A stretch of DNA of 64,000 nt from Setoptus koraiensis (GCA_048013815.1 CM106585.1:19096001-19160000); one strand, 5' to 3'. Shown: positions 8,595 through 27,741, counted from the first letter of the stretch. The notes: generated by a model from the sequence alone, not told the origin. A program made the numbers and translations.

Positions 8595-9050
8595 TTAGCC
8601 TCGACGCAGTGCGGCCCCTTCTAATCCTTTCGCTAGAACTGCCTCCACCTTTTTGCCATCCACTTTCTTTGCGGCGGCCTTCGAAACATCAAGCACTTGG
8701 CTCATCATGTGTTCGGCGGCAACATGTTTAGCCACTTTATCCGCAGTGGTCAGTACTTTTTCTTTGCGATCCTTTTCGCCACCCTCTTTTTCCGCCTCTT
8801 CCTTAGCTTTTTCAGCCTCTTCTTTGGCTTTTTTGTCGTCTTTGGAATGCTTGTGATGGGGGTGCTTGTGATGCTCTGGCTCGTGATGTTCGGGCTCCTT
8901 CGGTGGCTCGGGCTCCTTCGGTGGCTCGGGCTTATTTTCTGGCGTCAAAGCCTTCCCCGGCTCTGTCGGGTTCTCTGATTGAGAGCTGACGAAAATTATC
9001 AGGCTCATCACAATCAGAACGACTGGCAACATATGATTTATTGTCTTCAT
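8595..9050 (-). CDS. Secreted peptide precursor, family A (ALRRG), 151 aa
   Basis: ATG start and hydrophobic signal ending VSS|Q. It has EPPKEP repeats, a His/Lys-rich segment and EEAEKAK repeats. The C-terminus ALRRG* is shared with 13075 and 17845. Confidence 0.85.
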   Translation of the reverse strand: MKTINHMLPVVLIVMSLIIFVSSQSENPTEPGKALTPENKPEPPKEPEPPKEPEHHEPEHHKHPHHKHSKDDKKAKEEAEKAKEEAEKEGGEKDRKEKVLTTADKVAKHVAAEHMMSQVLDVSKAAAKKVDGKKVEAVLAKGLEGAALRRG

Positions 9051-10344
9051 CGTAGGCTATTTAGTATATAAGTTGTTTCTTGCTGTGTGGTACCTACGAT
9101 CGATAATATCTGAATATAATGTCTGACAATTTCTACAGGTATGTTCTTTGTTTTATTCGATTCAGGAGTCGAGTGCGGTGAAATTTCAGCACCTATGGCT
9201 CCGCTATTTGCTCAGCTTGATGGATTTGACCTTCACCATTCCACTCTGGCGAGCCTCGCCAGACACAAGCTTCGAATGCAAAAAAAAAATACAGAACGAC
9301 GCCAACGACAGCAGTTGTTGTTGGTAGTGGCAACAAGAAATGGATGAAGCTCAACAAATCGAATGCAAAACGAGCGCATTGGCAGATCCCACCATCATAG
9401 ATATCTGGCTGTTTGTTTGCGTATGATCAGGTGACAACGTAACCTTATCAATTGAAGAAACATGATTGACATGTGCGATTCGTATGACGATTAATTGGTG
9501 AAGTAGAAAGATGCTGACATCAGAAGGATACAAGTTAGTTTTATTTCTATTTGTAGACTACAATTCATTCCCTATCTCAGCCCCGAGACCGGGTCACAGT
9601 GTCTCGATTTCATCCAAACATTTGTTGGCTCGGTTGGTTGTGTTTTTTTTTATTTGACATTGAAACTGTCACTCAGTGTCGTGTCTTTCAGTTCGCGATT
9701 GAGTTTCTCATGCAAACGATACGAGACAATTCCTGACGGCAATCCTCTAAATATTTGCGGAAAAGTTGCGATATATTTGCCAATTATGATTGAATCCGGC
9801 AGGACATTATAAATGCCCCTCGTCGACCATGTTCCATCCAGAAAACGATACGATTGGGGGACTCTACTCTCCGTCTGAGGGAAATCGTTTGGAGTAACGA
9901 TGAAGAGGGTCATGATCACCTTTGCTGCACCGCAACAACACCAGGCGCGGCCAGCACAAACTCCAAGTATCTCGTAACGATTCTATGATTTCGATGATCG
10001 AAATTCGATCTATTATTTTGTAATGGACAGTAGCCGTGGATGCAACCACTATTGCTGTACCTGTCGTGTGCACTGGTAAGACACTGGAGAGACAGAGGGC
10101 AAAGAGAGATCTGTAGCGAAGAAATGAGGCTCGCGTCTTAACTTCATCACCTAGGACAAAGAACTCCGTCCCGACCGAAAATTTATTTTTTATTAAGATT
10201 AACTAATCATACTGGTGAGCTTTGAACAACTACTCTCGACAATTAATATATTTTGATGAATTATTGCTAACTAACAAGTGTATCTCGCGACGACTTGACC
10301 CGCTGCTCAATAATAGCTCACAGGGAGGTGCTGTTGTCACCAGT

Positions 10345-10671
10345 TTAGTAGAGGCCTGCTAATCCTGGGCGGCCCAATCCGGGGTAAGGGTAACCCGGGT
10401 AGGCGCCGTATGGGTATCCGTATAGCTCCTCTGCTTCGAGTTCTGCCTCAGCTTCCTCTTCATCCTCTAAGGCGGCTTCGGCTGCGAGAGGGTCGATTTG
10501 TCGCTCGAATCTGTGGAGCTCTGTGGCTTTTAATTTATGACGGTCGATTTCCTTTTCTTCGTGCTCGATTCTTCTGTTGTGGATTTTTTGTTGCAATTCC
10601 TTCAATTCGTGATCAGCAGCAACCATAACGGCCAAAGCAGCGACAATTAAACATACTAATGCGATCTTCAT
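10345..10671 (-). CDS. Secreted peptide precursor, family B (RFER|Q, Glu/Ala spacer, Gly-Tyr-Pro tail), 108 aa
   Basis: Signal is MKIALVCLIVAALAVMVAA. RFERQ parallels RTKRQ in 14356 and 19753, and the end PGLAGLY* parallels PGTGVLY*. Confidence 0.88.
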   Translation of the reverse strand: MKIALVCLIVAALAVMVAADHELKELQQKIHNRRIEHEEKEIDRHKLKATELHRFERQIDPLAAEAALEDEEEAEAELEAEELYGYPYGAYPGYPYPGLGRPGLAGLY

Positions 10672-10717
10672 TTTGGTTGATTTTTGTTGTTGGATTTGTA
10701 TTCCTACTTTTTAGCAG

Positions 10718-10777
10718 CTGCTCAGAACAGAATACAACAAACGATTATAAGTTATTAATTAATTATTAATGGCTTAC
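10718..10777 (-). other. Putative 60-nt 5'UTR intron of the 10671 gene
   Basis: On the minus strand GTG|GTAAGC starts at 10777 and TTCTGAGCAG| ends at 10718. A TATA-like run lies at 10916-10905. Confidence 0.5.
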
Positions 10778-12164
10778 CACTGTGTTAGCTACGATATTTC
10801 TAAGGTTGCTTATGGCGTACTTACTCTAGATAGCTATTAGTAAGCTGTTTATTATTGCTTGATGATCGGTCGACGATTGAATGATGATAGTAGCTCAAAT
10901 TCGCATTATATATATACGAAAAATTGTTGTGGTGCACCTCAACAATTTTTCGAGCTACAAACATGCATCAGACATTGTTTGCACAGACTAATTTGTCGAC
11001 CTTTCTTAGCGATCGCTTGCGAATGTCACAAACAGTGTCCAATTGGTTATTTGGAGCACTGGATTGACATTAATGACATCAATGTCTGCTGAGGCGACAA
11101 CAAATGTCAGCTATTTGCGTCAATGAGATGCTGAGTCCACAATGGCAAGCCGCAATGATCATGATTACGCAAGGCCTAATAATTCATGGCAGTTACATGG
11201 ATTCAAACAAACTCGACAGAATGTTTGCATTTTCCATGATCGTTGTTACATTGTTGATAGATTATGAAAATAGCATCACTTGAAATAACTATTTGTTATT
11301 TTCACAAGGGTCGACACACAATTAGCGCGCTTCCCTCGATCTCCATAGACAGTGTCGATCTAACGATTTTGTTGAAACCAACTCCAGATGATGGATTTGG
11401 CCGGCGTTTGCGGTGTTGTTGAGAGTTTACGTTGAAAAATACATCCCAGCCTGAGAATTAGTGAGCCAGTTCTGGTCATCGTAAACCAGCAATGAAAAGA
11501 AGATGAGAATCGTGCCACCACAATGATTCTGGTTGCTGCATTGCGTGACTAGAGATTCTATAATATTTTTTTTTTTATTTTAGGTTTCATATTGATTATT
11601 CAATTAAAATGAACCCAACCAATTCAGGATGACAGAGAGTTTTTAATTTTTACAAATGTTTAGCGGGTCACTCGTTGATTGCACCCATCATTATGAAGAA
11701 ATCTCTGTATGAGGCTTTCAATAAAATAGAAATTCTGACATTGCGTCGCAATCATGAACCAAGCCTTCACACTACTTTTCAAGTAGACGAAATAACTGTT
11801 GCATTCTTATTGATACATTCGCTAGAAGCCGAACTACAAACAGTGATCGTATTGTATCTCAACGGTATTCATCATGTGATGCAGATGTGCAGATTCCGAC
11901 AGCTCATCTATACCATATCTGACAGCAATAGCTTTTTTATTTGTCGTTTGTCACAACTACGAACAGAAAAATAACACGAGCAAGCGCATATTTCATCTTG
12001 TAGACAGACCAACTGAGCCATCCAATAAATACAGATATAATTTGTTAAAACAAAACTAGAAAATTTTGATTTAATGCAACAAGTATAGCAGATAGAACAA
12101 AGAGGTGCTTGACCGGAAGCACTTCGAATTCTCTAATAATCAATCAAACACAGGTAGTGTTGAC

Positions 12165-12485
12165 CTAAACCAACAATAAGGCTGCTGGTGCCACTTTCAT
12201 GGCCATTTTAGCTTCTGGAGATTTGACAACCGTTTTTCCGACTTTCTCAACCACTTTCATTTCTGGAGAATTTGCCACTTCCTTCACCTCGTGTGCGACC
12301 TTTTTTTCATCCTTCTTCACCTCGTGTACGACCTTTTTTTCATCCTTTTTCACCTCGTGCGCAATCTTCTTTTCTTCCTTTTTGATTTTGTGTTCCAACT
12401 TGTGGAAGAGACTTTTAGCTTCAACCATTTCGTTGCCGACGATCATCAAGACCACTAGTAATACGATTGGCAATATAATGCGCAT
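12165..12485 (-). CDS. Secreted Lys/His-rich helical peptide precursor with a 3x 11-aa repeat, related to family A, 106 aa
   Basis: Signal ends VEA|K and the mature part starts KSLFHKLEHKIKK. It has KK(I/V)(A/V)HEVKKDE repeats. PEMKVVEKV matches PEMKVAEKL of 17845. The tail VAPAALLLV is hydrophobic. Confidence 0.85.
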   Translation of the reverse strand: MRIILPIVLLVVLMIVGNEMVEAKSLFHKLEHKIKKEEKKIAHEVKKDEKKVVHEVKKDEKKVAHEVKEVANSPEMKVVEKVGKTVVKSPEAKMAMKVAPAALLLV

Positions 12486-13074
12486 TTTGTTGAGCTGTTG
12501 ATGGGTTCTTGTTATGACCTCTTGCGATTAGTAATAAAATCAAGAGGATTGGAATGATCGGATATTAGAAAATGGTTCTAGTACAACGAGCTGCAAGAGG
12601 ATGAATGAATATAATCAGCAAGCTCTTTTGATTCTATTGATTTACTTACTCACATTCGATAAGTATCGTTTGTTCAAACTCGAAACCGCTTCCAGACAAA
12701 GTAAATATAAACAAGAGCCTATCCGTCTAACACTTTTTATATATCAGACAATGTTAGTCATTATCCCAATCTAATCAAGCGTTTGAGCTCGATGATTAGG
12801 CTAAAGTAAATATCTTGGTTCTTATGACTTTTCCGTATGATATGCGAATCATCATCAATGTTTCGTCGAATGCAACAACCTTTGTGGGGGTGCTCATTTA
12901 CATACGATCATCACATGTTTATTAGTTGTTGCAAACTTGTTTAATTTACCATCTCTGTCTATTGGATCGGACTTATTCCACATTTTCCTGTCGGCTAGGC
13001 ACTGCTAAAAAACTTGCAACATTTAAAAACATTCAATTTACTGTGCAATTTCGCCGGAACAAATTACTGTAACA

Positions 13075-13341
13075 ATGAGGATTTCACAACTATTTTTGCT
13101 TGCCTTGTCACTGGTACTCGTCCAAATATTGTCAGTTTGTGGACAGGAAGACGAATCAAAGGATATAGGCGAAACTGCCGCCTCTACCTCTGCTTTAGCG
13201 GGTGAAGTAATTGCGAAAAAAAAGGTGAAGAAGCATGGACCTAAAGTCGCCCACGAGCTCAAAGAATCATTGAAGAAACACAAAGATCTACTTGGCAAAG
13301 GGGGAAAGGTCCTTGAGAAAGTGGCACTCAGAAGAGGATGA
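13075..13341 (+). CDS. Secreted peptide precursor, family A (ALRRG), 88 aa
   Basis: ATG start and signal ending VCG|Q, then an acidic/Ala spacer. The 41-aa C-terminal part has 13 Lys, 2 Arg and 4 acidic residues and ends KVALRRG*. Confidence 0.88.
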   Translation: MRISQLFLLALSLVLVQILSVCGQEDESKDIGETAASTSALAGEVIAKKKVKKHGPKVAHELKESLKKHKDLLGKGGKVLEKVALRRG

Positions 13342-14214
13342 ACGGCCTATGGCATCAGTGCGGAAACCAATCGATGATGGAACTATTGGAAGTTTATAGG
13401 TTCATTAGAATACGAATGTTCTTTTCGAAAAATCATTAGCATGTGAATAAAAAGACGAATTCTGACAGCTTGCAACATATTCTCCCTCTCTCTCTCTTTC
13501 GTTTTTCGTGTAACAATGAAAGAAATCTTCTCGAATTCAGAGATCCTCTAGTATCATGCTGTAACAAGTGGATCACGAGGCGATAATTGAAATTTCCAAA
13601 CTCCAACAGGAGTTCTTTTTTCCAGCTGCTGGTGTTATGCTATATGATAAATACAAACACCACAATGAGTGGCAAAAGAGAGGACAGAGGCAAATAATCA
13701 GGTATATCTGTCGTCTAACCACCCGAATGTGTCCACCAGTTGACCAGATATGTCTCGTTTGACTGTCACATTTAGATATTCAATCATCAATGGATTTGTG
13801 CGCTTGAAAAGGCGAAAAAATAAACAGACTAGGTGAGACCAGCGTCAACTGACTTGAATTACCTCTCTCCTCTCAGGTATATGTTACGAGAAAAGGTTGG
13901 CTCACTCAATGTATGCTTTCGGATCCGTTTCTTCTGTAAATAATTGACAAATATTGAAAGAGTATGTGTCAACATGACTCGATAGTTCATGCAATTCTTC
14001 ATCCACAGACACATTGAAAAGGTCAGCAAACACAATATGTCCCAGTTCGCTTACTGAATTGTGCCAGATCATCTTGTCAGCGATACATATAAAAGGATGT
14101 ACCTCAACCATTGTGACTAACAAGTATTAACTTCTGCCGTTGACTAATATTGTCCGATCTAGTCATCTTAGACCGATATATTCCAATTGAATTCATCCAT
14201 CAAGGGCCAAAAAG

Positions 14215-14337
14215 GTAAGTGATGCTCACTATAGAGCGAAATTAATTATCTCATTCTTGGAAATCTCATCCGCTAACCAGAACAACAAATATTTTTTCAT
14301 TACAAAAACCCATTCAAATTTATCTGGCCGATTTCAG
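14215..14337 (+). other. Putative 123-nt 5'UTR intron of the 14356 gene
   Basis: AAG|GTAAGT at 14215, GATTTCAG| at 14337, and TATAAAAG at 14088. Confidence 0.55.
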
Positions 14338-14355
14338 ACAACACTTATTGAAAAA

Positions 14356-14616
14356 ATGAAATCCGTAGTACTATTAATGGTGTTGGTGAGCTGCATGGTG
14401 GCCCTTGTGATGGCCAATGATAGCGATGACCTCTACCGAACCAAGAGACAAACTTTGGAAGGTGAGCTGGCCAGAGAGGAGCTTGAACGAGAGGAGCTAG
14501 ATGATCTGTCATTGCGCCGATTGCCACTGTTGCCCTACCGCCGACCTTTGTTGCCATTGTTGCCCAGACTACCATTATTACGTCGCCGCTTACCTGGTAC
14601 TGGCGTGTTGTACTAA
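14356..14616 (+). CDS. Secreted Pro/Arg/Leu-rich peptide precursor, family B, 86 aa
   Basis: The first ATG is 14356 (the ORF-track start at 14257 is TTG). Order is signal, RTKR|Q, Glu-rich spacer, then RLPLLPYRRPLLPLLPRLPLLRRRLPGTGVLY. Confidence 0.9.
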   Translation: MKSVVLLMVLVSCMVALVMANDSDDLYRTKRQTLEGELAREELEREELDDLSLRRLPLLPYRRPLLPLLPRLPLLRRRLPGTGVLY

Positions 14617-14928
14617 AAATGGCAGCTAGCAAAACGGTCAGATGACTAAATGAAGGCGTCAATTATGTCAATTAACATTAGTAAAGTCATCAGCGCGCAT
14701 CAGACGCTCTAATGATAACTTGTCACTTGTTGTTGTTTGTCATTATTTTGATCTATAAAATGAGATAATGGGCTCAAAATCTTGAATAGTCTGTCTTTAA
14801 TTTTTTCTCCCAATGACATCATACTCCTATTTATCCATCGTCATAGTAGCAAACATCTGATGCGATGCATCTTTAGCTTCGGATACTCTTCGAAATCTGC
14901 TTTTTGTTGCTTTTGTTACTGTACTTGC

Positions 14929-15186
14929 TCATCGCTCGTCTGCCCAATGAATATCTTCAGCTAACTCCTCCATCATGATCACTTTATGTCCGTCTTTGTA
15001 TCGGACATTTGTGCCAGGTTCCTGATCGTTCCTTCCAACCAGATACTCATAAGTTACGGGACATTTAAAGCAACTAACGCTATCGCGAACGTTTCTCAAC
15101 ATGGAAACGGGTCCAGATAGAACAAGCCGAGAAAAGATGGTCGCAAACATGATTGTCAAAATCACTTTCATCATGCTGTTTCCCAT
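14929..15186 (-). CDS. Short secreted protein, family C (GPVS); probably a truncated paralogue of 15550..16461
   Basis: MKVILTIMFATIFSRLVLSGPVSMLR aligns with MKLILTILLTITILEVVLAGPVSLLK. The likely start is 15171. Confidence 0.6.
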   Translation of the reverse strand: MGNSMMKVILTIMFATIFSRLVLSGPVSMLRNVRDSVSCFKCPVTYEYLVGRNDQEPGTNVRYKDGHKVIMMEELAEDIHWADER

Positions 15187-15549
15187 TGCACGGTTATTTA
15201 ATATATCCTAAATAATTATCATGTGTAATGGATGGTGGTATCTAAATGGAATAGTTTATGGAACAAGACCAGGTACGTTGGACTAACGTGACAGACCAAG
15301 CTTTTTAAAGTTAAAAATAGACCATAATCGACAGTAGTGAAATAATTCGCTAGACACGAGTTGATGGGCTGTGACACGTTTGATTGAATCGAAGTGGCGA
15401 CAAAAGCAACACGTAGAGATGAATTATTCCAACGAATGTGGAACATGGTGAAGATTTTCTGAGCCGCGTATGGAAACTGAGAAAGTATCAAATAAAATAA
15501 AATAAATATCACCAAAACTATCTTGATCAGTTATGCAGAATCAAGATAG

Positions 15550-16461
15550 TCAACTAAATTGCCTACTTTCTTGCTTCTCCGCTAGGTTTTTCTTCAATTT
15601 GTTTATCACATTGTCCATCAATTCAGTATCCTTTCCATTTTTGTCCTTCTCTGCGTCTTTGTAGTTGTTCCTTTTGCCCAAATTCTTCTGTAAAATGTTG
15701 ATCACATTTTCCTTCAATTCTCTATCCTTTTCATTTTTACCCTTCTCTGCGTATTTGTTGTTGCTTCTTTCCGCTAGGTTCTTCTGTAAAATATTGATCA
15801 CATTTTCCTTCAATTCTCTTTGCCTTTCAACTCGGTCATTCATAGTCTCTACTGTTCCCAGGCGTTCTTTTTTCTCTCTTGGGCCTTTTTGTGACTTTTT
15901 TTCAGCACTTCCTGCCGAATCTGGATGCCGGGCAACTTTATTACCCATTGCTTCTGCTCCATCCGTTCTCTCGGCGAGCCTCCTCTGTAAATAGTTTATT
16001 GCATCTTCCGCTAATTCTCTCTGCCTGTCAATTTTAGTATTAGTTGAGTTTTCTGCGTCCGCACGTTCTTCCCTCTCCGCTACTTTCTTTTGTAACCTGC
16101 TTATTACATTCTCTGCCACGTCTGCATGCATTAGGATTTTTTTATGTTCTGCTATTTTATCCTCTTTCAGTTTCATCTTCATCTCCATCTCATTCGGAGA
16201 TTTCATATCTCTCACAATTTGGTCGTCCATCTGTGTTCTTCCACTGTTTATTTTGAATCGGTTGTCAGGCCCCTCTACATTCAAGAGATTTCTGTGAAAT
16301 TGTTCCATTAGTGGAGATTCGTAGCGCTCAACTGGGGGACACTCATGAGTTGGTGAAACACCGAAGCAACCCCTGAAAGCCCTTTTTAATAATGAAACGG
16401 GCCCAGCAAGAACGACCTCAAGAATTGTTATTGTCAGCAGGATTGTCAGTATCAATTTCAT
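15550..16461 (-). CDS. Secreted charged coiled-coil repeat protein, family C, 303 aa
   Basis: Signal peptide followed by GPVS. It has five copies of an (R/D)ELxENVINxLQKxLAER-like motif, and the last three are near-tandem at 31-32 aa spacing. Confidence 0.88.
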   Translation of the reverse strand: MKLILTILLTITILEVVLAGPVSLLKRAFRGCFGVSPTHECPPVERYESPLMEQFHRNLLNVEGPDNRFKINSGRTQMDDQIVRDMKSPNEMEMKMKLKEDKIAEHKKILMHADVAENVISRLQKKVAEREERADAENSTNTKIDRQRELAEDAINYLQRRLAERTDGAEAMGNKVARHPDSAGSAEKKSQKGPREKKERLGTVETMNDRVERQRELKENVINILQKNLAERSNNKYAEKGKNEKDRELKENVINILQKNLGKRNNYKDAEKDKNGKDTELMDNVINKLKKNLAEKQESRQFS

Positions 16462-17844
16462 TGTTCCTTCAATTATTCAGGTATCTAATGGTACCGAATT
16501 ATAATCAGATACCAATGGTAGTAGAGTGTTTGTCATAGATTCGGACTTATATTCAAACGGATGGAAATCATTTTTGAGAACCATTTCATAACATATCCCC
16601 TTACAGTTTGAAAAAAGTCTATTTTTAGCTGTCTGTTCGTGTGCTCGAAAAATCAATCATATTATCACTATCATATTGGTTATATTTCATTCATTGCAAT
16701 CGGTCTAGCATGACGTTATTTCACTAACAAGCGAGTCTATCTGGTGCGCAATCATAGCCCGTCGGTTAACATGAGGGGCCAGTTCAGAAGCAAAATGACC
16801 CTCCGAAGCAGGCCCCCAAAAAGAACATTCCAGTCATCAGACAGCATCGATAGTGGCCATCTACTGACTTACTCTCAACTAGGTCCGAGAGATTGACATA
16901 GACTGTTTCATGCTGTTTTTCTCATCAACTTCAAATTGACTAGCTGTAGATGCGCGATAAGCTCGTGGCAGAAGCTTCAAGATATTTTTCTTGTCGAGGT
17001 TTTTCCAATTGTCAACTCAACACCAATCAGCGGGCAAGTTGCAGCGAAGAGGGGAAAGGTCAAATGATCAATAAGCTTGAATAAATTAGATATGATTTAT
17101 CCGATGACACCAGTCCTCTCTAAAACAAACAGTGTGGCTCTCATGCGCTCTTGGCGATGTCCACAAAACTGATGATCTTTCAGATCTTCTATTTGCATTG
17201 TCAAAAAAGTCACTCAAGTTCAAACATGGTTGTGTTAGCAGTTATCAGTCAAAGTGGATTTGTTTTTCTTTGCTACACCGTGTGACCAAAGAACGCAGCA
17301 CCTGTCCAGACCACCATGCTATTAGACCGTCACGATTGTAGAGCTTTATTTAAGCGTACTATTTACGTCGCGCTGCGGCGCCAGACAGTGACTCTGACAT
17401 CAATTATATTGATAATAATGAAGGTGAATGCGTGCCTCTTACAAGGTAAACCTCATTCCTGATGACATCGATTGTTAAATGTCATGTGGCTCTGTTTGCC
17501 TATCGTCATCTCGTGGGCAAGCATTGGCGCGTACACGCTGGCCAGACCTGTTGATTTGCCTGAAACGTAAATAACCACACTTTTCTGGTTATTGCGTACT
17601 TTTTGACGCGTTGTTAGCAGGTACAACCCTGATGTGTTTGTTTAAATATTCCTCACCTTGATGATCTCATTCTAGGCTCGGAATTATTATCGAGCCAAAC
17701 TTTATCCGGTGTCTCACTTGTATTTAACCGTGACACATCCCGTACATCGATATCGTCCATCTCTTGATAATAAAGAAGTGAGTTCATAGAATAGATATTA
17801 CAAGTGTTGAAAATATAAACAAAAAAAAAAGACAATACTGAACC

Positions 17845-18123
17845 ATGAAGATCACACAGAAATCGTTGCTAGTTTTCTGCTTTGTTTTGCTGAGTCTGGT
17901 TGCCGTAGTTTGCGGCCAAGACCCGCCAAAACCAGCGGCTGCCGGTGCAGAGGAGTCTAGCGCCGGGGCAGATGCTGCAATTACGGCCGGATCCATTGGT
18001 GGTCAAGCAGCTCTATCCCATCAAGCAAAGAAGCATCATCTGAAAGACAAACTGAAAAAGGTGGCGCACAAACTCAAGCCCGAGATGAAAGTCGCTGAGA
18101 AGCTGGCTCTCAGGAGAGGATGA
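17845..18123 (+). CDS. Secreted peptide precursor, family A (ALRRG), 92 aa
   Basis: ATG start with TATAAA about 30 nt upstream. Signal ends VCG|Q, followed by an Ala-rich spacer. The tail KKHHLKDKLKKVAHKLKPEMKVAEKLALRRG* is cationic. Confidence 0.88.
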   Translation: MKITQKSLLVFCFVLLSLVAVVCGQDPPKPAAAGAEESSAGADAAITAGSIGGQAALSHQAKKHHLKDKLKKVAHKLKPEMKVAEKLALRRG

Positions 18124-19601
18124 ACAAAACACAATCTAAAATAATAATAACAACAGTGATATCTTAAACGAGCATTATCCTGAATGGGCCGAAAAAATCT
18201 GGTGGTGGACATGACATTTCATGGTTTCGATATAGTTAATTTAGGTTTGGATCAAATTGGAAACAGTCGAAAATCAAGCAAAAACATCTTGCTAACGTAT
18301 TACATTGGTTATTGCAAAACATCAGTGCTTAAAGATACAAGTAACGTAGTTTGCGAACAAAGATTAAGCGTAAATTGACAGTTATTGAGTCACCTTTAGC
18401 AAAATATAACTCATGACATGACGCACACGATCCCAAGTCAAAATATCTTAATCATTACTGTCATTGTTATTGTTTGTTATCGAAATAAAATGTTATTGTT
18501 TTCATTTGTTTGAATCTAGATCGATCTATTGATAATGTTGCTCGTTATTTTGACTTTGCATTGGGTATTTAATGGACTTTTGTGAGCGTAATCTACGTCG
18601 ATCTGTTCTATTTCTGCTACAGAATTACGAAATAACACCAATATCAACTGTGACTTTCATCTGTCTGTTCAATTTAAATCAATATACGCACACGGCACCC
18701 AAGAAATCATTTTCCGCCAAATGTATTTACGCAAACTGCTAGTTGCAGAGTATAGAGTTTCTCCATTCTTGGAATCGTTACATCACAAAAGTTTTTTTTT
18801 TCGTAAACAACCCCTGAAACTGATGGTTGCCATCATGTAGTCAGTCTAGAAAACCAAAAGATTCATGATTCGTACTGTTCAGCACGAGACAGTAATTCGA
18901 GAAATCAAGAAATGTTTATGTGTTTTTCTTATGAGATTGCTTGATCGAGTAGACCATTAGAAAGTATATTTCCACCTACGTGTCACATTGAGAGTGACAG
19001 TTTTTTTTCTATAATCTTTTAGTGCAGTTTTGAGCTAGTCAATTGTATCCCTGCTACCGAAAAGAGCCCGAAATTAGATGCCAAAGACCCGGTGTGCTAC
19101 AAAATTCTGCTGTAAGAGAGAAAGATTTAGATGTCTCAACTTTATCTTGGTTTAATTAGTTTTTTCGTCTGTTTGCCCATCTCTGGTCCAGTGCGAGTTG
19201 TTTCGAATGTATAGTTGCAGGCTAGGCAACATTGGATAGATGTCGAATCGCTTTTTAACGAACCTTTGCCTGGCTATAAATTCTCTACATGTGTGCAATA
19301 CCACTGCAACTCATTATCACTGTTTACTGTAGTATTCACGTTTTTCCTTGTATTATTGTATGTCAAATAGAGGAATCGTTTGGTGTAATGTCATGAGTGT
19401 GCATATGTATCGCCACAAAGGTCAACTAATGGTCCCGCGAATTCTGACACACTTTGCATAATTGACATGTGAGAAAAATTTACTATATAAGAGGAACCAT
19501 GCTAATTAGTGTAGCCAGAAAGCCATTAACAATAACTGACATTATTCAATTTTGTCATCCGACAGCCAACAAAGAAACTACATCTATTTAGTGCCAAACA
19601 G

Positions 19602-19752: not shown

Positions 19753-20004
19753 ATGAAATCCGTAGTACTATTAATGGTGTTGGTGAGCTGCATGGTGGCA
19801 CTTGTGATGGCCAATGATAGCGATGACCTGTCCCGAACAAAGAGACAAACTTTGGAAGGTGAGCTGGCCAGAGAAGAGCTTGAACGAGAGGAGCTAGATG
19901 ATCTGTCATTGCGCCGATTGCCACTGTTGCCCTACCGCCGACCTTTGTTGCCCAGACTACCATTATTACGTCGCCGCTTACCTGGTACTGGCGTGTTGTA
20001 CTAA
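19753..20004 (+). CDS. Secreted Pro/Arg/Leu-rich peptide precursor, family B, 83 aa; near-identical paralogue of 14356
   Basis: ATG at 19753. It differs from 14356 by 5 substitutions and a 9-bp indel. Confidence 0.9.
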   Translation: MKSVVLLMVLVSCMVALVMANDSDDLSRTKRQTLEGELAREELEREELDDLSLRRLPLLPYRRPLLPRLPLLRRRLPGTGVLY

Positions 20005-22801: not shown

Positions 22802-23743
22802 GGCGAGATCGACACCATCTTGAAGCTGGGCGTCAAGCCGGACGACATCATCTACGCGAACCCGTGCAAGACAAAGTCGTACATCAAGCACGCGCATAAC
22901 GTCGGCATCAATCTGATGACTTTCGACAACGAGCTCGAGTTGCACAAGATCGCCCAATTACATCCGGAGGCCGAGATGGTGTTGCGCATCAAGGGCGACG
23001 ACAGTCACTCGCGTTGCCAGTTCAATGTTAAGTTTGGCGCCGACTTGGACAAGTCATACGGCCTGCTCAAGCTGGCAAAAGAGCTCAACATCAGCGTGGT
23101 GGGTGTCTCGTTTCACGTAGGCAGCGACTGCGACCGGCCCGAGGTGTACACCGACGTTTTAGCCCGTTGCCGGCTCGTATTCGATTGGGCCGAATCGTTG
23201 GGTCACAAGATGCGCATTGTCGACATTGGTGGAGGATTTCCGGGCAATGTTAATGCCAAAATTGCGTTTAGCGACTACGCTACCGTTATTAATCGAGCAT
23301 TGGACACTTATTTTCCCGGAAACGATGTGCAAATCATTGCAGAGCCTGGCCGTTATTATGTGGCATCGGCGTTCACCTTGGCCGCCATGGTCATTGGCAA
23401 AAAAATCGATGAGGCCAACGATACGTTCATGTACTATCTGAACGATGGTGTCTACGGGGCATTCAACAACACCATCTTTGAGCATGCAATTGCCGAGCCC
23501 ACATTGCTTTTAGACAAGCGTGACATGTACAAGCGTAATGTTCGTATGACAACTCTATGGGGACCAACCTGCGACTCGATAGATTGCATTAGAAGCAACT
23601 TTTATTTACCTGAGTTGAGCATCGGCGAATGGTTGATATTCCCGAACATGGGCGCTTACACATCATGCGTTGCTACAGTTTTCAATGGCTTTGAGAGGGC
23701 CAAAATCATCATAGCCAACTCTGATTTCAATGAATGTAAATAA
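22802..23743 (+). CDS. ODC1: Ornithine decarboxylase, exon 2 (spliced protein about 392 aa)
   Basis: Acceptor TTCAG|GGC at 22801. Motifs IIYANPCK, KFGA, SFHVGS, DIGGGFPG, AEPGRY, WGPTCDS and MGAYT are present. Confidence 0.96.
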   Translation, partial: GEIDTILKLGVKPDDIIYANPCKTKSYIKHAHNVGINLMTFDNELELHKIAQLHPEAEMVLRIKGDDSHSRCQFNVKFGADLDKSYGLLKLAKELNISVVGVSFHVGSDCDRPEVYTDVLARCRLVFDWAESLGHKMRIVDIGGGFPGNVNAKIAFSDYATVINRALDTYFPGNDVQIIAEPGRYYVASAFTLAAMVIGKKIDEANDTFMYYLNDGVYGAFNNTIFEHAIAEPTLLLDKRDMYKRNVRMTTLWGPTCDSIDCIRSNFYLPELSIGEWLIFPNMGAYTSCVATVFNGFERAKIIIANSDFNECK

Positions 23744-23981
23744 ATTGAATCAAAAAATAAAATTTTCAGCCATTTATAATGTAGCGCTGATATTATTGCT
23801 GAATTTCAATAGTCTTCGTCGTTATCTCTCTCTCTCTCCCTGCTGCTGTTGCTCGGCAAGCACGGCGGTATTTAATTACAACCATCAGTCAGTGGTGATT
23901 GCAAAATTTCATTCAGCCAATCACTGTTGTGTGGCACTCGAATACTGGCTGAGTCGCAATAGTTGTTTGGAAAACGACGCA

Positions 23982-24971
23982 ATGCTCTTAAAATTGTTTT
24001 TACCGATCCTTGTGGTGGGTTTTCTGGCGACTGACTATGTCTACGTGTACGCACATTTCCACGAACCGGGAGAAATATCCGGCCATCGTAACGGATATTC
24101 ACGAGGAGGCAGAAAACGACCCAATGGGAGACCAAGACAACAAATTGAATGCGGTGTAAATAAATTTGGTAGAACCAGAATAACGTATGGCCAACCAGCA
24201 GAGCCCGACTTCTATCCGTGGATGGCGCGCTTCGTTAGCGCGTCTGAATCATGGTCGAGGTTTCACCTCGCGTGTGGGGGATCCATTTTGAATGAACATT
24301 TTATTCTGACAGCGGCCCATTGTCTTATTGGGCCGTCGGCCAAGAGAGTGTTTGTTGGTGACAATGATCAGTCACAAGTCGACCCAACTCAAAGAAGTTA
24401 CGCGATAGAGCAGACTTACGTGCATCCTTCTTTTAAGAATTATGAACATGATATTGGCCTGGTGAAATTAGCCGAGCCAATTGAATGGACTGATTCGATC
24501 AGGCCAATCTGTTTGCCGGCTAGGGACACCAATCTCGAGCCAGGAGCAAATCTGACAATAATAGGTTTTGGCGCAATATCAACCCGTGATGCCATGTTAC
24601 CACATTTGCTGCAAGTTTCCCATGTCCCTCTTGTTTCCGATGAAGTATGTGCCAAAACTTGGAAAACAGAGTACGTTGCAGAAAATATGTTCTGCCTCGG
24701 CGAACAAGATGAAAACGGCCTGTTAATATCTAGCCCTTGCGATGGCGATTTAGGTGGACCGGCCATGATACCGATAAATAATCGCTGGACACAAATTGGC
24801 ATAACTTCGACTTTCGATAAAAGATGTAGAACGGCAGAAAAATACGGCATTTTCACAAAATTGACCCAATATCTCGATTGGATTGAAAGTATCACTTACC
24901 CGTATGGAGTAAGAGGCGAGGCGAACCGAAAGACAGGTCATCGAAGTAGAAGAAGACAAACAAGTAGATGA
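23982..24971 (+). CDS. Secreted S1A serine-protease homologue, predicted inactive (GDSGGP -> GDLGGP)
   Basis: Signal peptide from ATG 23982 and activation site R|ITYG. TAAHC and DIGL are intact, but the catalytic Ser codon is TTA at 24750-24752. Confidence 0.9.
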   Translation: MLLKLFLPILVVGFLATDYVYVYAHFHEPGEISGHRNGYSRGGRKRPNGRPRQQIECGVNKFGRTRITYGQPAEPDFYPWMARFVSASESWSRFHLACGGSILNEHFILTAAHCLIGPSAKRVFVGDNDQSQVDPTQRSYAIEQTYVHPSFKNYEHDIGLVKLAEPIEWTDSIRPICLPARDTNLEPGANLTIIGFGAISTRDAMLPHLLQVSHVPLVSDEVCAKTWKTEYVAENMFCLGEQDENGLLISSPCDGDLGGPAMIPINNRWTQIGITSTFDKRCRTAEKYGIFTKLTQYLDWIESITYPYGVRGEANRKTGHRSRRRQTSR

Positions 24972-25340
24972 AAACGACAAAGTACAAGAGACTTGTTTGA
25001 AGAAGCCAATATTTTGAACTAACTCACTGCTACACATAACCATTGATGTTTCGTCCTCGTGTTCGCTCTTTTGTAAATCCATGCCCGGCTTTTTTCGAGA
25101 GTCGAGATTGTTCTCTGGGTAGCCAAAATCATCAATGGGTATGAGCGTAAATAAACTGAATCAAATATAACTTTCAGACTCGTTTACTATTTGCTCTCTC
25201 TGTCGCTGTTGCTCAGCATAGTATTTAATTACCACCGTCAGTCAGTGGTGATTGCAAAATTTCATTCAGCCAATCACTGTTGTGTGGCACTCGGAGACTG
25301 GCTAGATCACAATAGTTCTCCGTTTCTGAAAAACGGCGCA

Positions 25341-26264
25341 ATGCTCTTGAAGTTGTTGTTACCGCTGGCTGTGGTAGGTTTTCTGACGGCCGACCATGTC
25401 TACGTGTACGCACATTTCGACAAGCCGCGAGAAATATCTGGCCAGTATCATGGATATTCAGGAGAAAGCGGAAAACAACCGAGTAGAAGATCGAGACGAC
25501 AAATTGAATGTGGTGTAAATAAATTTGGAAGAACAAGAATAACGCATGGTCAACCAACAGAGCCGGAGGTCTATCCGTGGATGGCACGAGTTGACAGTTG
25601 TGGAGGATCAATTTTGAATGAATATTTTATTCTGACTGCTGCACATTGTATTCATAAAGATCGGCCAAAGAACGACCGAGTAATTCTTGGTGACCATTAT
25701 CGAGAAAAATTCGACCCAACTGAAATAATTTACGAGGTAGAGGAGAAATTCATGCATCCTCTTTATAAGGACGGATTATTGGGAAATGATATTGCCCTGG
25801 TGAAATTAACCAAACCAATTGAATGGACTGATTTGATCAGGCCAATCTGTTTGCCGGCTAGAGACAACAATCTTGAGCCAGGAGCAAATCTGACAATCAT
25901 AGGTTTTGGCGCAATAGAAGCCACTAGCTCCTTTTTGTATACGTTTCCAGATGTGCTGCAAGTTGCCCATGTTCCTCTTGTTTCCGAAGAAGAATGTGCC
26001 GATACTTGGAATACAGAGGAAAAGAAAAGGTACAAAGCAGAAGAAATGATCTGCCTCGGTGAACATGATGAAAATGGCATGATGAAGTCCTCCACCTGCT
26101 ATGGCGACTCAGGTGGACCGGCCATGATACCGCTAAATAATCGCTGGACACAAATTGGCATAGCTTCTTGGGGACAAAGCGGATGTAAACTGAAATACAG
26201 CGTTTACACAAGATTGACCCATTATGTCGATTGGATTGAAAGTGTCATTAATTCGCATGGGTAA
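25341..26264 (+). CDS. Secreted S1A serine protease with an intact triad and a non-tryptic S1 pocket
   Basis: ATG 25341 with signal peptide. Has R|ITHG, TAAHC, DIAL and STCYGDSGGP (Ser at position 189). Confidence 0.93.
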   Translation: MLLKLLLPLAVVGFLTADHVYVYAHFDKPREISGQYHGYSGESGKQPSRRSRRQIECGVNKFGRTRITHGQPTEPEVYPWMARVDSCGGSILNEYFILTAAHCIHKDRPKNDRVILGDHYREKFDPTEIIYEVEEKFMHPLYKDGLLGNDIALVKLTKPIEWTDLIRPICLPARDNNLEPGANLTIIGFGAIEATSSFLYTFPDVLQVAHVPLVSEEECADTWNTEEKKRYKAEEMICLGEHDENGMMKSSTCYGDSGGPAMIPLNNRWTQIGIASWGQSGCKLKYSVYTRLTHYVDWIESVINSHG

Positions 26265-26474
26265 GAAGCGAGGAAAAAGTAAGAGGAGCCAATCAAGTAG
26301 ATGAAAACGACAAAGTACAAGAGACTCGTTTGAAGAAGTCAATAATTTGAACTTACTCACTGCTAAACATAACCATTGATGTTTCGTCCTGCGCTCTTTT
26401 GTAAATCCATGCCCGGTTTTTTTCGAGAGTCGAGATTGTTCGCTGGGTAGCTGTACACCGGAAATTACTAAATG

Positions 26475-26580
26475 TTTGATCGAGCTGCATCGCTGGATCA
26501 CAAGATGCGCACGGTCGACATTGAAAGCGGATTCCATCAGCGCCAATATTCCGTCCAGCGATGACGTGGCCATTATAATA
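26475..26580 (+). pseudogene. Decayed ornithine decarboxylase fragment
   Basis: It translates as FDRAASLDHKMRTVDIESGF, then after a frameshift ANIPSSDDVAII. ODC (23180-23293) reads FDWAESLGHKMRIVDIGGGF...AKIAFSDYATVI. Confidence 0.85.
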
Positions 26581-26820
26581 TATGTCTGTCGATAACACTC
26601 TGAAATAGCCAAAATCATCAATGGGTATGAGCGTAAATAAACTGAATCAAATATAACTTTCAGACTCGCTTACTATTTGCTCTCTCTGTCGCTGTTGCTC
26701 AGCATAGTATTTAATTACCACCATCAGTCAGTGGTGATTGCAAAATTTCATTCAGCCAATCACTGTTGTGTGGCACTCGAATACTGGCTGAGTCGCAATA
26801 GTTGTTTGGAAAACGACGCA

Positions 26821-27741
26821 ATGCTCTTAAAATTGTTTTTACCGATCCTTGTGGTGGGTTTTCTGGCGACTGACTATGTCTACGTGTACGCACATTTCCA
26901 CGAACCGGGAGAAATATCCGGCCATCGTAACGGATATTCACGAGGAGGCAGAAAACGACCCAATGGGCAACCAAGACAACAAATTGAATGCGGTGTAAAT
27001 AAATTTGGTAGAACCAGAATAATTCATGGCCAACCAGCAGAGCCCGACTTCTATCCGTGGATGGCACGCCTGGGAGGTTGTGGAGGATCCATTTTGAATG
27101 AATATTTTATTCTGACAGCGGCACATTGTATTAAAAGTGAGACCGACCGAGTAATTCTTGGTGACCATAGTCGAGTCGAATACGACCCAACTGAAAAAAT
27201 TTACGAGGTAGAGGAGAAATTCGTGCATCCTCTTTATAATGAATTTGGTGCGAATTATGATATTGCCCTGGTGAAATTAACCGAACCAATTGAATGGACT
27301 GATTCGATCAGGCCAATCTGTTTGCCGACTAGAGACATCAATCTTGAGCCAGGAGCAACTCTGACAATCATAGGTTTTGGCGCAATAGAAACCACTGACA
27401 CCTTTTCGGACATAGATACGTATCCAGATGTGCTGCAAGTTGCCCATGCTCCTATTGTTTCCGAAGAAGAATGTGCCAATTCTTGGAATACAGAAAGAGA
27501 CAAACCGTACGTAGCAGAGGGAATGATCTGCCTCGGCGAACATGATGTAAATGGCGAGTTAAAATCTGGCACTTGCTATGGCGATTCAGGTGGACCGGCC
27601 ATGATGCCGATAAATGATCGCTGGACACAAATTGGCATAACTTCTTGGGGACGAAGCGGATGTAAACTAAAATACAACGTTTACACAAGATTGACCCATT
27701 ATGTCGATTGGATTGAAAGTGTCATTAATTCGCATGGGTAA
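26821..27741 (+). CDS. Secreted S1A serine protease with an intact triad; mosaic of copies 1 and 2
   Basis: ATG 26821. Has R|IIHG, TAAHC, DIAL and GTCYGDSGGP (Gly at position 189). Confidence 0.93.
   Translation: MLLKLFLPILVVGFLATDYVYVYAHFHEPGEISGHRNGYSRGGRKRPNGQPRQQIECGVNKFGRTRIIHGQPAEPDFYPWMARLGGCGGSILNEYFILTAAHCIKSETDRVILGDHSRVEYDPTEKIYEVEEKFVHPLYNEFGANYDIALVKLTEPIEWTDSIRPICLPTRDINLEPGATLTIIGFGAIETTDTFSDIDTYPDVLQVAHAPIVSEEECANSWNTERDKPYVAEGMICLGEHDVNGELKSGTCYGDSGGPAMMPINDRWTQIGITSWGRSGCKLKYNVYTRLTHYVDWIESVINSHG

Follow-up and report, generated by a model that had tools for sequence, protein, structure and literature searches.

The stretch of Setoptus koraiensis DNA analysed here (GCA_048013815.1 CM106585.1:19096001-19160000; 64,000 nucleotides, hereafter the window) carries three small genes, which we call g1, g2 and g3, whose signal-peptide-bearing products all end in the residues ALRRG followed by a stop codon. 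Together with a fourth paralogue, g4, they make up family A. Judging from sequence, this is an orphan family of an acariform mite, confined to its lineage and without named relatives, and its four intronless genes lie clustered. The reading that we favour, at chances that we hold to be about even, is that the family A products are secreted, helical, Lys/His-rich proteins in which the terminal Leu-basic-basic-Gly-stop would be a Gly-extended substrate of the enzymes PHM and PAL. C-terminal amidation itself is plausible, by analogy with known amidated peptides. What the analysis shows directly is the genes, their paralogy and synteny, the selection on the tail and the transcript-like single-exon contigs of g2 and g3; that the products are secreted, amidated, helical when dissolved or membrane-bound, or cleaved internally, and what they act on, are points that we infer.

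Three genes with a common ending

The g1 gene (8595-9050, minus strand) encodes a 151-aa precursor made of a signal peptide, a low-complexity middle rich in Pro/Glu/His and in Lys/Glu, and a helical C-terminal part that closes on GAALRRG-stop. The g2 gene (13075-13341, plus strand) encodes 88 aa, in which a signal peptide and a 24-aa acidic spacer precede a 41-aa Lys/His-rich tail ending in KVALRRG-stop, and g3 (17845-18123, plus strand) encodes 92 aa, where the signal peptide is followed by a spacer rich in Ala, Gly and Pro and then by a 31-aa Lys/His-rich tail ending in KLALRRG-stop. A preliminary description of this DNA had reported that the three open reading frames (ORFs) spell ALRRG-stop with differing codons, and both the coordinates and the codons match: GCA CTG CGT CGA GGC TAA in g1 (8595-8612, minus strand), GCA CTC AGA AGA GGA TGA in g2 (13324-13341, plus strand) and GCT CTC AGG AGA GGA TGA in g3 (18106-18123, plus strand). 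It had also counted the charges of the tails correctly (net +11 for the 41 aa of g2 and +9 for the 31 aa of g3), and two more of its observations were found again, namely a KVA(H/K) motif in all three proteins (DKVAKHV in the C-terminal part of g1, PKVAHEL in g2 and KKVAHKL in g3) and a Gln as the first residue after the predicted signal (VSS/QSE, VCG/QED and VCG/QDP in g1, g2 and g3, the slash marking the cleavage placed by inspection with the -3/-1 rule). In every family member the N-terminal segment is hydrophobic and small residues occupy -3/-1, which by inspection is signal-like.

The window has 403 ATG-initiated ORFs of 30 aa or more, of which g1, g2 and g3 alone end in [RK][RK]G. Their tail codons differ at 5 nt between g1 and g2, at 6 nt between g1 and g3 and at 2 nt between g2 and g3, and every one of these differences is synonymous. 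The probability that the peptide would survive that many random hits on 15 nt is 0.0014, 0.0002 and 0.08, respectively, and we therefore attribute the common tail to descent plus selection and to neither chance nor recent gene conversion.

Orthologues and selection

Two contigs of a related species, L002 and L001, are syntenic with the window, the former carrying g1, a Gly/Tyr/Pro-tailed gene, g4 and g2 in that order, and the latter two genes of the GPVS type (described below) and then g3. The orthologues of g1-g4 are 64-79% identical to their counterparts in the window. That of g1 (L002:37-519, minus strand; 64%) ends in AALHRG, that of g2 (P0002, L002:7181-7453, plus strand; 67%) in VALKRG and that of g3 (P0001, on L001; 71-76%) in IALRKG, and a more distant relative of g1 from an ENA assembly, P0125, ends in VLLHRG. 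The kept ending is [A/L]-Leu-[R/K/H]-[R/K]-Gly-stop, the Gly being present in seven of the seven basic-tail proteins, from at least three species, and written as GGC, GGA or GGT. At the two basic positions all replacements are conservative. The Ala and Leu of the tail are the sole invariant non-signal columns among all eight family sequences. The preliminary description had let its case depend on whether orthologues keep the tail; they do keep it as Leu-basic-basic-Gly-stop, but the exact ALRRG varies, being replaced by ALHRG, ALKRG, ALRKG and LLHRG.

We estimated the ratio of nonsynonymous to synonymous divergence (dN/dS, or omega) by the Nei-Gojobori method between the window species and the related species, for which dS is about 1.0-1.5. 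Whole-protein omega was 0.215 for g1, 0.16 for g2, 0.14 for g3 and 0.09 for g4. The earlier proposal that the tail is under purifying selection is borne out, the paralogues differing in it only synonymously and the orthologues keeping Leu-basic-basic-Gly-stop at a dS of about 1-1.5. In a relative about 95% identical to the window species (runs X11 and X12), g3 shows five synonymous and no nonsynonymous changes, none of them in the last 32 codons, together with an in-frame 6-nt deletion in the spacer and many changes in the 3′ untranslated region (UTR). The upstream regions are kept between orthologues but not between paralogues, and thus give no shared-promoter signal.

Relatives were sought with word-index protein searches (using g3 and a five-sequence profile) and with an exhaustive hidden Markov model (HMM) search of 1.84 billion protein representatives. 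The word-index searches matched only two orthologues (one Logan run). The exhaustive search gave six matches, the three orthologues, P0125, P0124 and P0126, and no named relative among the 1.84 billion proteins; P0126 was rejected as a relative, its match being one of Lys/Asp/Glu composition. Exact-sequence look-ups of g1, g2 and g3 in public assemblies gave no match, nor did a Pfam scan of all cluster proteins and orthologues at threshold or an Rfam scan of the window. A Pfam match to ETRAMP (E=0.006-0.011) was set aside as sub-threshold and compositional.

Transcript-like contigs

Read contigs were compared with window positions 12800-18400. The DNA-like run X1 spans the whole of this stretch, and run X7, 99-100% identical to the window, has contigs only over genes, at 12880-13471, 14351-14677, 14946-15217 and from 17721 onward. 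The contig over g2 (12880-13471, plus strand; 592 nt, 0 differences) is unspliced and ends 20 nt after an AATAAA at 13446-13451. That over g3 (17721-18504, plus strand; 806 nt) is likewise unspliced, begins with an adapter remnant at 17721 and carries AATAAA at 18484-18489; its 3′ end at about 18504, 15 nt after this signal, is extrapolated, since it lies some 104 nt beyond the compared stretch. No joints were seen inside either contig. Thus g2 and g3 look like single-exon polyadenylated mRNAs, run X7 being presumed RNA, and on this view the g2 and g3 ORFs, including the Gly-stop, are read correctly.

These results bear on the simplest alternative, that the ORFs are chance or non-coding and their common tail an artefact. 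They are short (88-151 aa) and match nothing in Pfam, as such an alternative would have it. However, a second species has them intact, with omega of 0.14-0.22 where dS is saturated, their synteny is kept, transcript-like contigs with poly(A) signals cover g2 and g3 and the tails differ synonymously only, so that we regard this explanation as refuted, with practically no probability left to it.

The fourth paralogue and the layout of the family

The g4 gene (12165-12485, minus strand) encodes 106 aa, with three 11-aa repeats of the form KK(D/E)EKK(I/V)(A/V)HEV (a 33-bp DNA repeat in 3.1 copies, 12283-12383), and ends in AALLLV-stop, without the basic-Gly tail. Beyond Ala-Leu, AALLLV and ALRRG are of equal length. 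The motifs KVAH and PEMKV.EK tie g4 to the family, its SPEMKVVEK matching the PEMKVAEK of g3. Its orthologue (L002:6054-6380, minus strand; 79% identical, with the omega of 0.09 given above) has the same final AALLLV. Since g4 carries the module with this other end, the basic-Gly tail is not essential to the module.

The layout common to the family is a signal peptide, a variable low-complexity spacer (acidic in g2, Ala/Gly/Pro-rich in g3, Pro/Glu/His- and Lys/Glu-rich in g1) and a Lys/His-rich module with an 11-residue rhythm and the core KVAH...(P)EMKV.EK.AL; the last 33 residues of g2 divide into three 11-mers. We also noted a His-rich tract at about residues 40-70 of g1 (8840-8935, minus strand), EPEHHEPEHHKHPHHKH, and another at about residues 50-65 of P0125, HHHHHHHKHDHH. 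This tract of the g1 lineage, kept in composition and not in sequence, may be a metal-binding or pH-sensing segment.

The 11-residue rhythm suggests another explanation of the ending, by which basic-basic-Gly is the end of the last amphipathic repeat (KV.EK.ALRRG), or a site of convertase/carboxypeptidase trimming, and the products are surface-coating or structural helical proteins, for example LEA- or apolipoprotein-like 11-mer helices serving as components of eggs, spermatophores or adhesives. The three exact 11-mers of g4, the three 11-mers of the g2 tail, the retention of the module with a different end in g4 and the long Lys/Glu- and His-rich low-complexity tracts of g1 agree with it, and so do the PDB sequence searches with the family profile, which returned only designed coiled coils, the best matches, and myoglobin, all above E=0.001. 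However, a repeat leaves unexplained both the final Gly of all seven basic-tail proteins and the restriction of the two preceding residues to R, K and H, while a convertase cut that frees a single Gly has no known purpose. We consider a structural role of this kind unlikely.

The amidation reading weighed

We read the terminal Gly as an amide donor because the last residue is invariably Gly while the preceding two vary only among basic residues, and because this ending is missing from the hydrophobic-ended paralogue g4. Such a Gly would donate the amide to the arthropod amidating enzymes PHM plus PAL, and the reaction would leave a C-terminal Arg- or Lys-amide in which the positive charge is kept, the carboxylate is gone and carboxypeptidase trimming of the basic pair is blocked. 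The product would be a secreted, positively charged, weakly hydrophobic amphipathic helix acting on anionic surfaces, whether microbial or host-cell membranes, cell walls or nucleic acids, and its histidines would add charge at acidic pH. A precedent exists in the black-fly salivary cecropin SibaCec, which consists of a signal peptide, 34 residues and one terminal Gly and whose amidation was shown by mass spectrometry (PMC4620007), and amidation is predicted for many of the linear venom peptides of spiders (PMC8290080). Of the features expected of Gly-extended amidated peptides, entry into the secretory pathway is indicated by the signal-like segment, as judged by inspection, and a conserved precursor-final Gly by the Gly-stop of all seven proteins.

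The preliminary description had pictured the products as cationic amphipathic peptides, and this is only partly so. It holds for the g2 tail, with its net charge of +11 and a hydrophobic moment at 100 degrees of 0.42 against 0.16 in shuffles (p=0.004), and for the charge of g3 (+9), but not for the moment of g3 or the charge of g1. Mature family A proteins contain no Cys, and helical or disordered structure is predicted for them. An AlphaFold2 (AF2) model of g3 from a shallow family alignment has a long helix at residues 40-91 and a disordered spacer, at low confidence (predicted local distance difference test, pLDDT, 59.6).

Several observations weigh against the amidation reading or against the wider picture of end-protected cationic peptides. 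The moment of the g3 tail is 0.30 (p=0.16), so that its amphipathicity is not significant. The g1 product is not cationic, its mature protein having a net charge of -1 and its last 51 aa only +4, and the hydrophobic-moment calculation found no amphipathicity in these 51 residues. Mean hydrophobicity is low (Eisenberg -0.38 to -0.45). The N-terminal Gln is absent from the g3 orthologue (HC/AEDP) and from P0125 (NS/EKPE), and it sits on the far end of an Ala/Gly/Pro-rich, mildly acidic spacer, away from the cationic helix; a product therefore cannot be a released cationic tail and have both of its ends protected. No propeptide cleavage motif, either dibasic or of the arachnid processing quadruplet type (PQM), is conserved across family members. 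The window genes have KK or KKK as dibasic sites, KR being confined to the orthologue of g2, and the spider-type PQM (Glu-x-x-Arg) occurs only in g1 (EKDR); at that place the orthologue of g1 reads MGGR and P0125 lacks an Arg. In g2 and g3, every Arg falls within the last five residues. The most constrained member, g4, has the hydrophobic AALLLV end. Finally, constraint between species is no stronger in the tail than elsewhere in the protein, omega being 0.29, 0.10 and 0.13 in the tails of g1, g2 and g3 versus 0.13, 0.26 and 0.15 in their spacer or middle.

That the spacer too is under purifying selection speaks against a released peptide in particular, and the earlier picture of an end-protected cationic peptide set free from its precursor found no support: Gln is not conserved, no cleavage site is kept and the net charge of g1 is -1. 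The products may act as whole proteins of 65-128 residues, and among the candidate functions are an antimicrobial or cytolytic helix, a salivary effector with Lys runs resembling nuclear localization signals (NLS) and a structural or coating 11-mer helix.

The second of these functions forms part of a further explanation, which we see as possible though on the doubtful side. By this account the products are effectors secreted by a gland, salivary or other, and function as intact small proteins; their conserved C-terminus, amidated or not, would dock on a host target, and the Lys-rich stretches (KKKVKK/KRKVKK in g2 and its orthologue, KKHHLKDKLKK in g3) would be nuclear-import or polyanion-binding signals in the plant cell. 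Purifying selection on the entire protein, spacer included (omega 0.13-0.26), fits whole-protein function, the K[KR]KVKK motif is kept between species and the genes lie within a syntenic cluster of at least nine orphan secreted-protein genes of several families. If the mite is a plant-feeding eriophyoid, orphan secreted proteins are standard effector candidates; in Aculops lycopersici, 351 of the 612 predicted secreted proteins are short and lineage-specific (PMC7738191). However, its composition would lead one to expect NLS-like strings in any Lys-rich helix, selection on effector families is usually diversifying and not purifying, and for the mite the sequence data here establish no more than an arthropod/acariform affinity.

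Comparison with known peptide families

Family A shares with insect cecropins such as SibaCec (PMC4620007) a signal peptide, a Lys-rich helix of about 30-40 aa with a net charge of +8 to +11 and a single Gly before the stop, and a salivary-gland origin is possible both for SibaCec and for family A. In contrast to cecropins, it has a spacer of 24-100 aa between signal peptide and helix, without a clear cleavage site, and its helix is His-rich, much less hydrophobic and basic in its C-terminal part, where cecropins have a hydrophobic C-terminal helix. There is no sequence similarity between the two and no Pfam cecropin match. No cecropins are known from Acari.

The tick salivary "basic tail" proteins are secreted Acari proteins with a Lys-rich basic C-terminal tail that is thought to bind anionic membranes, and they contain a Cys-containing folded domain. 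Family A differs from them in having no Cys in its mature part, and no sequence relationship to them was detected.

The linear cytolytic peptides of spiders (latarcins, cupiennins and oxyopinins; PF10279; the "simple precursors" of PMC8290080) resemble family A in coming from the arachnid lineage and, in part, in a layout where the signal peptide is followed by an anionic or neutral propiece and then by a single cationic amphipathic helix that runs up to the stop; C-terminal amidation, which family A products may undergo, is frequent among them. When the latarcin layout of signal, anionic propiece, cationic helix and stop is applied to the window genes, g2 and g3 fit and g1, at a net charge of -1, does not, with amphipathicity significant in g2 only. 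Spider propeptides follow a quadruplet rule, with Arg at -1 and Glu at -2, -3 or -4 (PMC8290080), but family A lacks a conserved PQM (Glu-x-x-Arg) of this kind. The Pfam Latarcin profile (PF10279, gathering score 25 bits) had no match at E<=1 for g1-g4 and none at E<=10 for three orthologues (r2, r3 and r4) and P0125.

The family profile did match P0124 (on L003, from a JGI metagenome) at E=1.9e-8. This five-unit precursor scores 45.8 bits with the Pfam Latarcin profile, above the cutoff of 25, and its units, GFW.TVKKDAKKVGHDVSKAANSPVGQIAEKAALTAL..R, align with the core KKV(A/G)H...SP...AEK.AL of g4 and g3. The link to family A comes down to one compositionally biased unit of about 40 aa (41% identity), repeated five times, and since a gene for a GFA-domain protein lies 150 nt away, P0124 may not be arachnid. 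Scanning metagenomes with P0124 itself brought up two close relatives of it, L005 (137-1342) and L006 (167-1546), with 8-11 units, and P0124 is closer to family A than either of them. In all three of these JGI contigs the units are (G/S/N)FW.T(V/L)KKD... peptides set apart by acidic linkers that have Arg at both ends and obey the spider iPQM/PQM rule. When metagenomes were scanned with the unit alignment instead, there was no match, and an ESM Atlas look-up of P0124 gave no usable one.

The connection of family A to latarcin-like multi-peptide precursors through P0124 is no more than suggestive, and a latarcin-type processing architecture may exist outside spiders. We do not claim homology of family A to latarcins, as L005 and L006 are less like it and the bridge is one short biased unit. 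Family A works most like the Gly-extended cationic helical peptides (cecropins, latarcins, cupiennins) while being a member of neither family. A bolder version, which we think improbable, would make it the mite branch of an ancient arachnid latarcin-like superfamily, re-used in a venomless, plant-feeding gall or rust mite as amidated, His-switchable salivary peptides acting on plant membranes or nuclei. If true, this would be the first molecular handle on how eriophyoids manipulate host cells.

Genomic setting

The window comes from an intron-poor animal, with a single-ORF DDX23/Prp28 helicase, an ornithine decarboxylase, a KCNQ-like channel and three tandem trypsin-like proteases. The best named relatives of the DDX23 protein are from an oribatid mite and other chelicerates, hence the arthropod/acariform affinity. 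Family A lies in a cluster (8.6-20 kb) of small intronless signal-peptide genes of several unrelated types.

Between g4 and the Gly/Tyr/Pro-tailed gene, at 11675-11974 (plus strand; matches at 11702-11933), we found a remnant of an MgtE/SLC41-type magnesium transporter. The 441-aa gene is intact in the related species (L002:4335-5660), and only the first 28 or so and the last 50 or so of its codons are left in the window, so that about 345 codons have been deleted. Conversely, L001:1933-2715 (minus strand) holds the gene of a 260-aa signal-peptide protein between a 303-aa repeat protein and g3. At 16500-17800 of the window tblastn found no trace of this gene, so the cluster has either acquired or lost it.

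A Pro/Arg/Leu-rich precursor (family B) is encoded in two nearly identical copies, at 14356-14616 and 19753-20004, both on the plus strand, and it is over the first copy that contigs of run X7 reach the greatest word depth of the compared stretch. At 14350/14351 the contigs of three runs break and continue upstream with unrelated letters, and one relative's contig skips 14211-14338. This first copy may therefore have an intron in its 5′ UTR, or else a 5′ end that is alternative or trans-spliced. Secreted proteins with a common N-terminal GPVS...C..C motif, with orthologues in L001, are encoded at 14929-15186 and 15550-16461 (both minus strand), the longer one containing coiled-coil-like repeats of 96 bp (32 aa), NVINILQKNLAE. 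These GPVS-type proteins mark out a third orphan family in the cluster. The three tandem trypsin-like serine protease genes (23730-27741, plus strand) are single-exon and have N-terminal signal-anchor-like segments, and the first copy differs from the other two by an insertion around the region after the activation site.

Biological meaning

Should the amidation reading fail, family A would be one more orphan secreted-protein family, and its processing logic is in any case textbook. Its paralogues offer a clean natural experiment, since the module ends in basic-basic-Gly in three of them but has a hydrophobic end in the fourth. Should the products indeed be amidated cationic helices, no linear peptides of the antimicrobial or cytolytic type would have been described before them from this mite lineage, and the family would also provide compact, syntenic and apparently transcribed candidates for immunity or host manipulation, in a group whose secreted arsenal is almost wholly uncharacterised.

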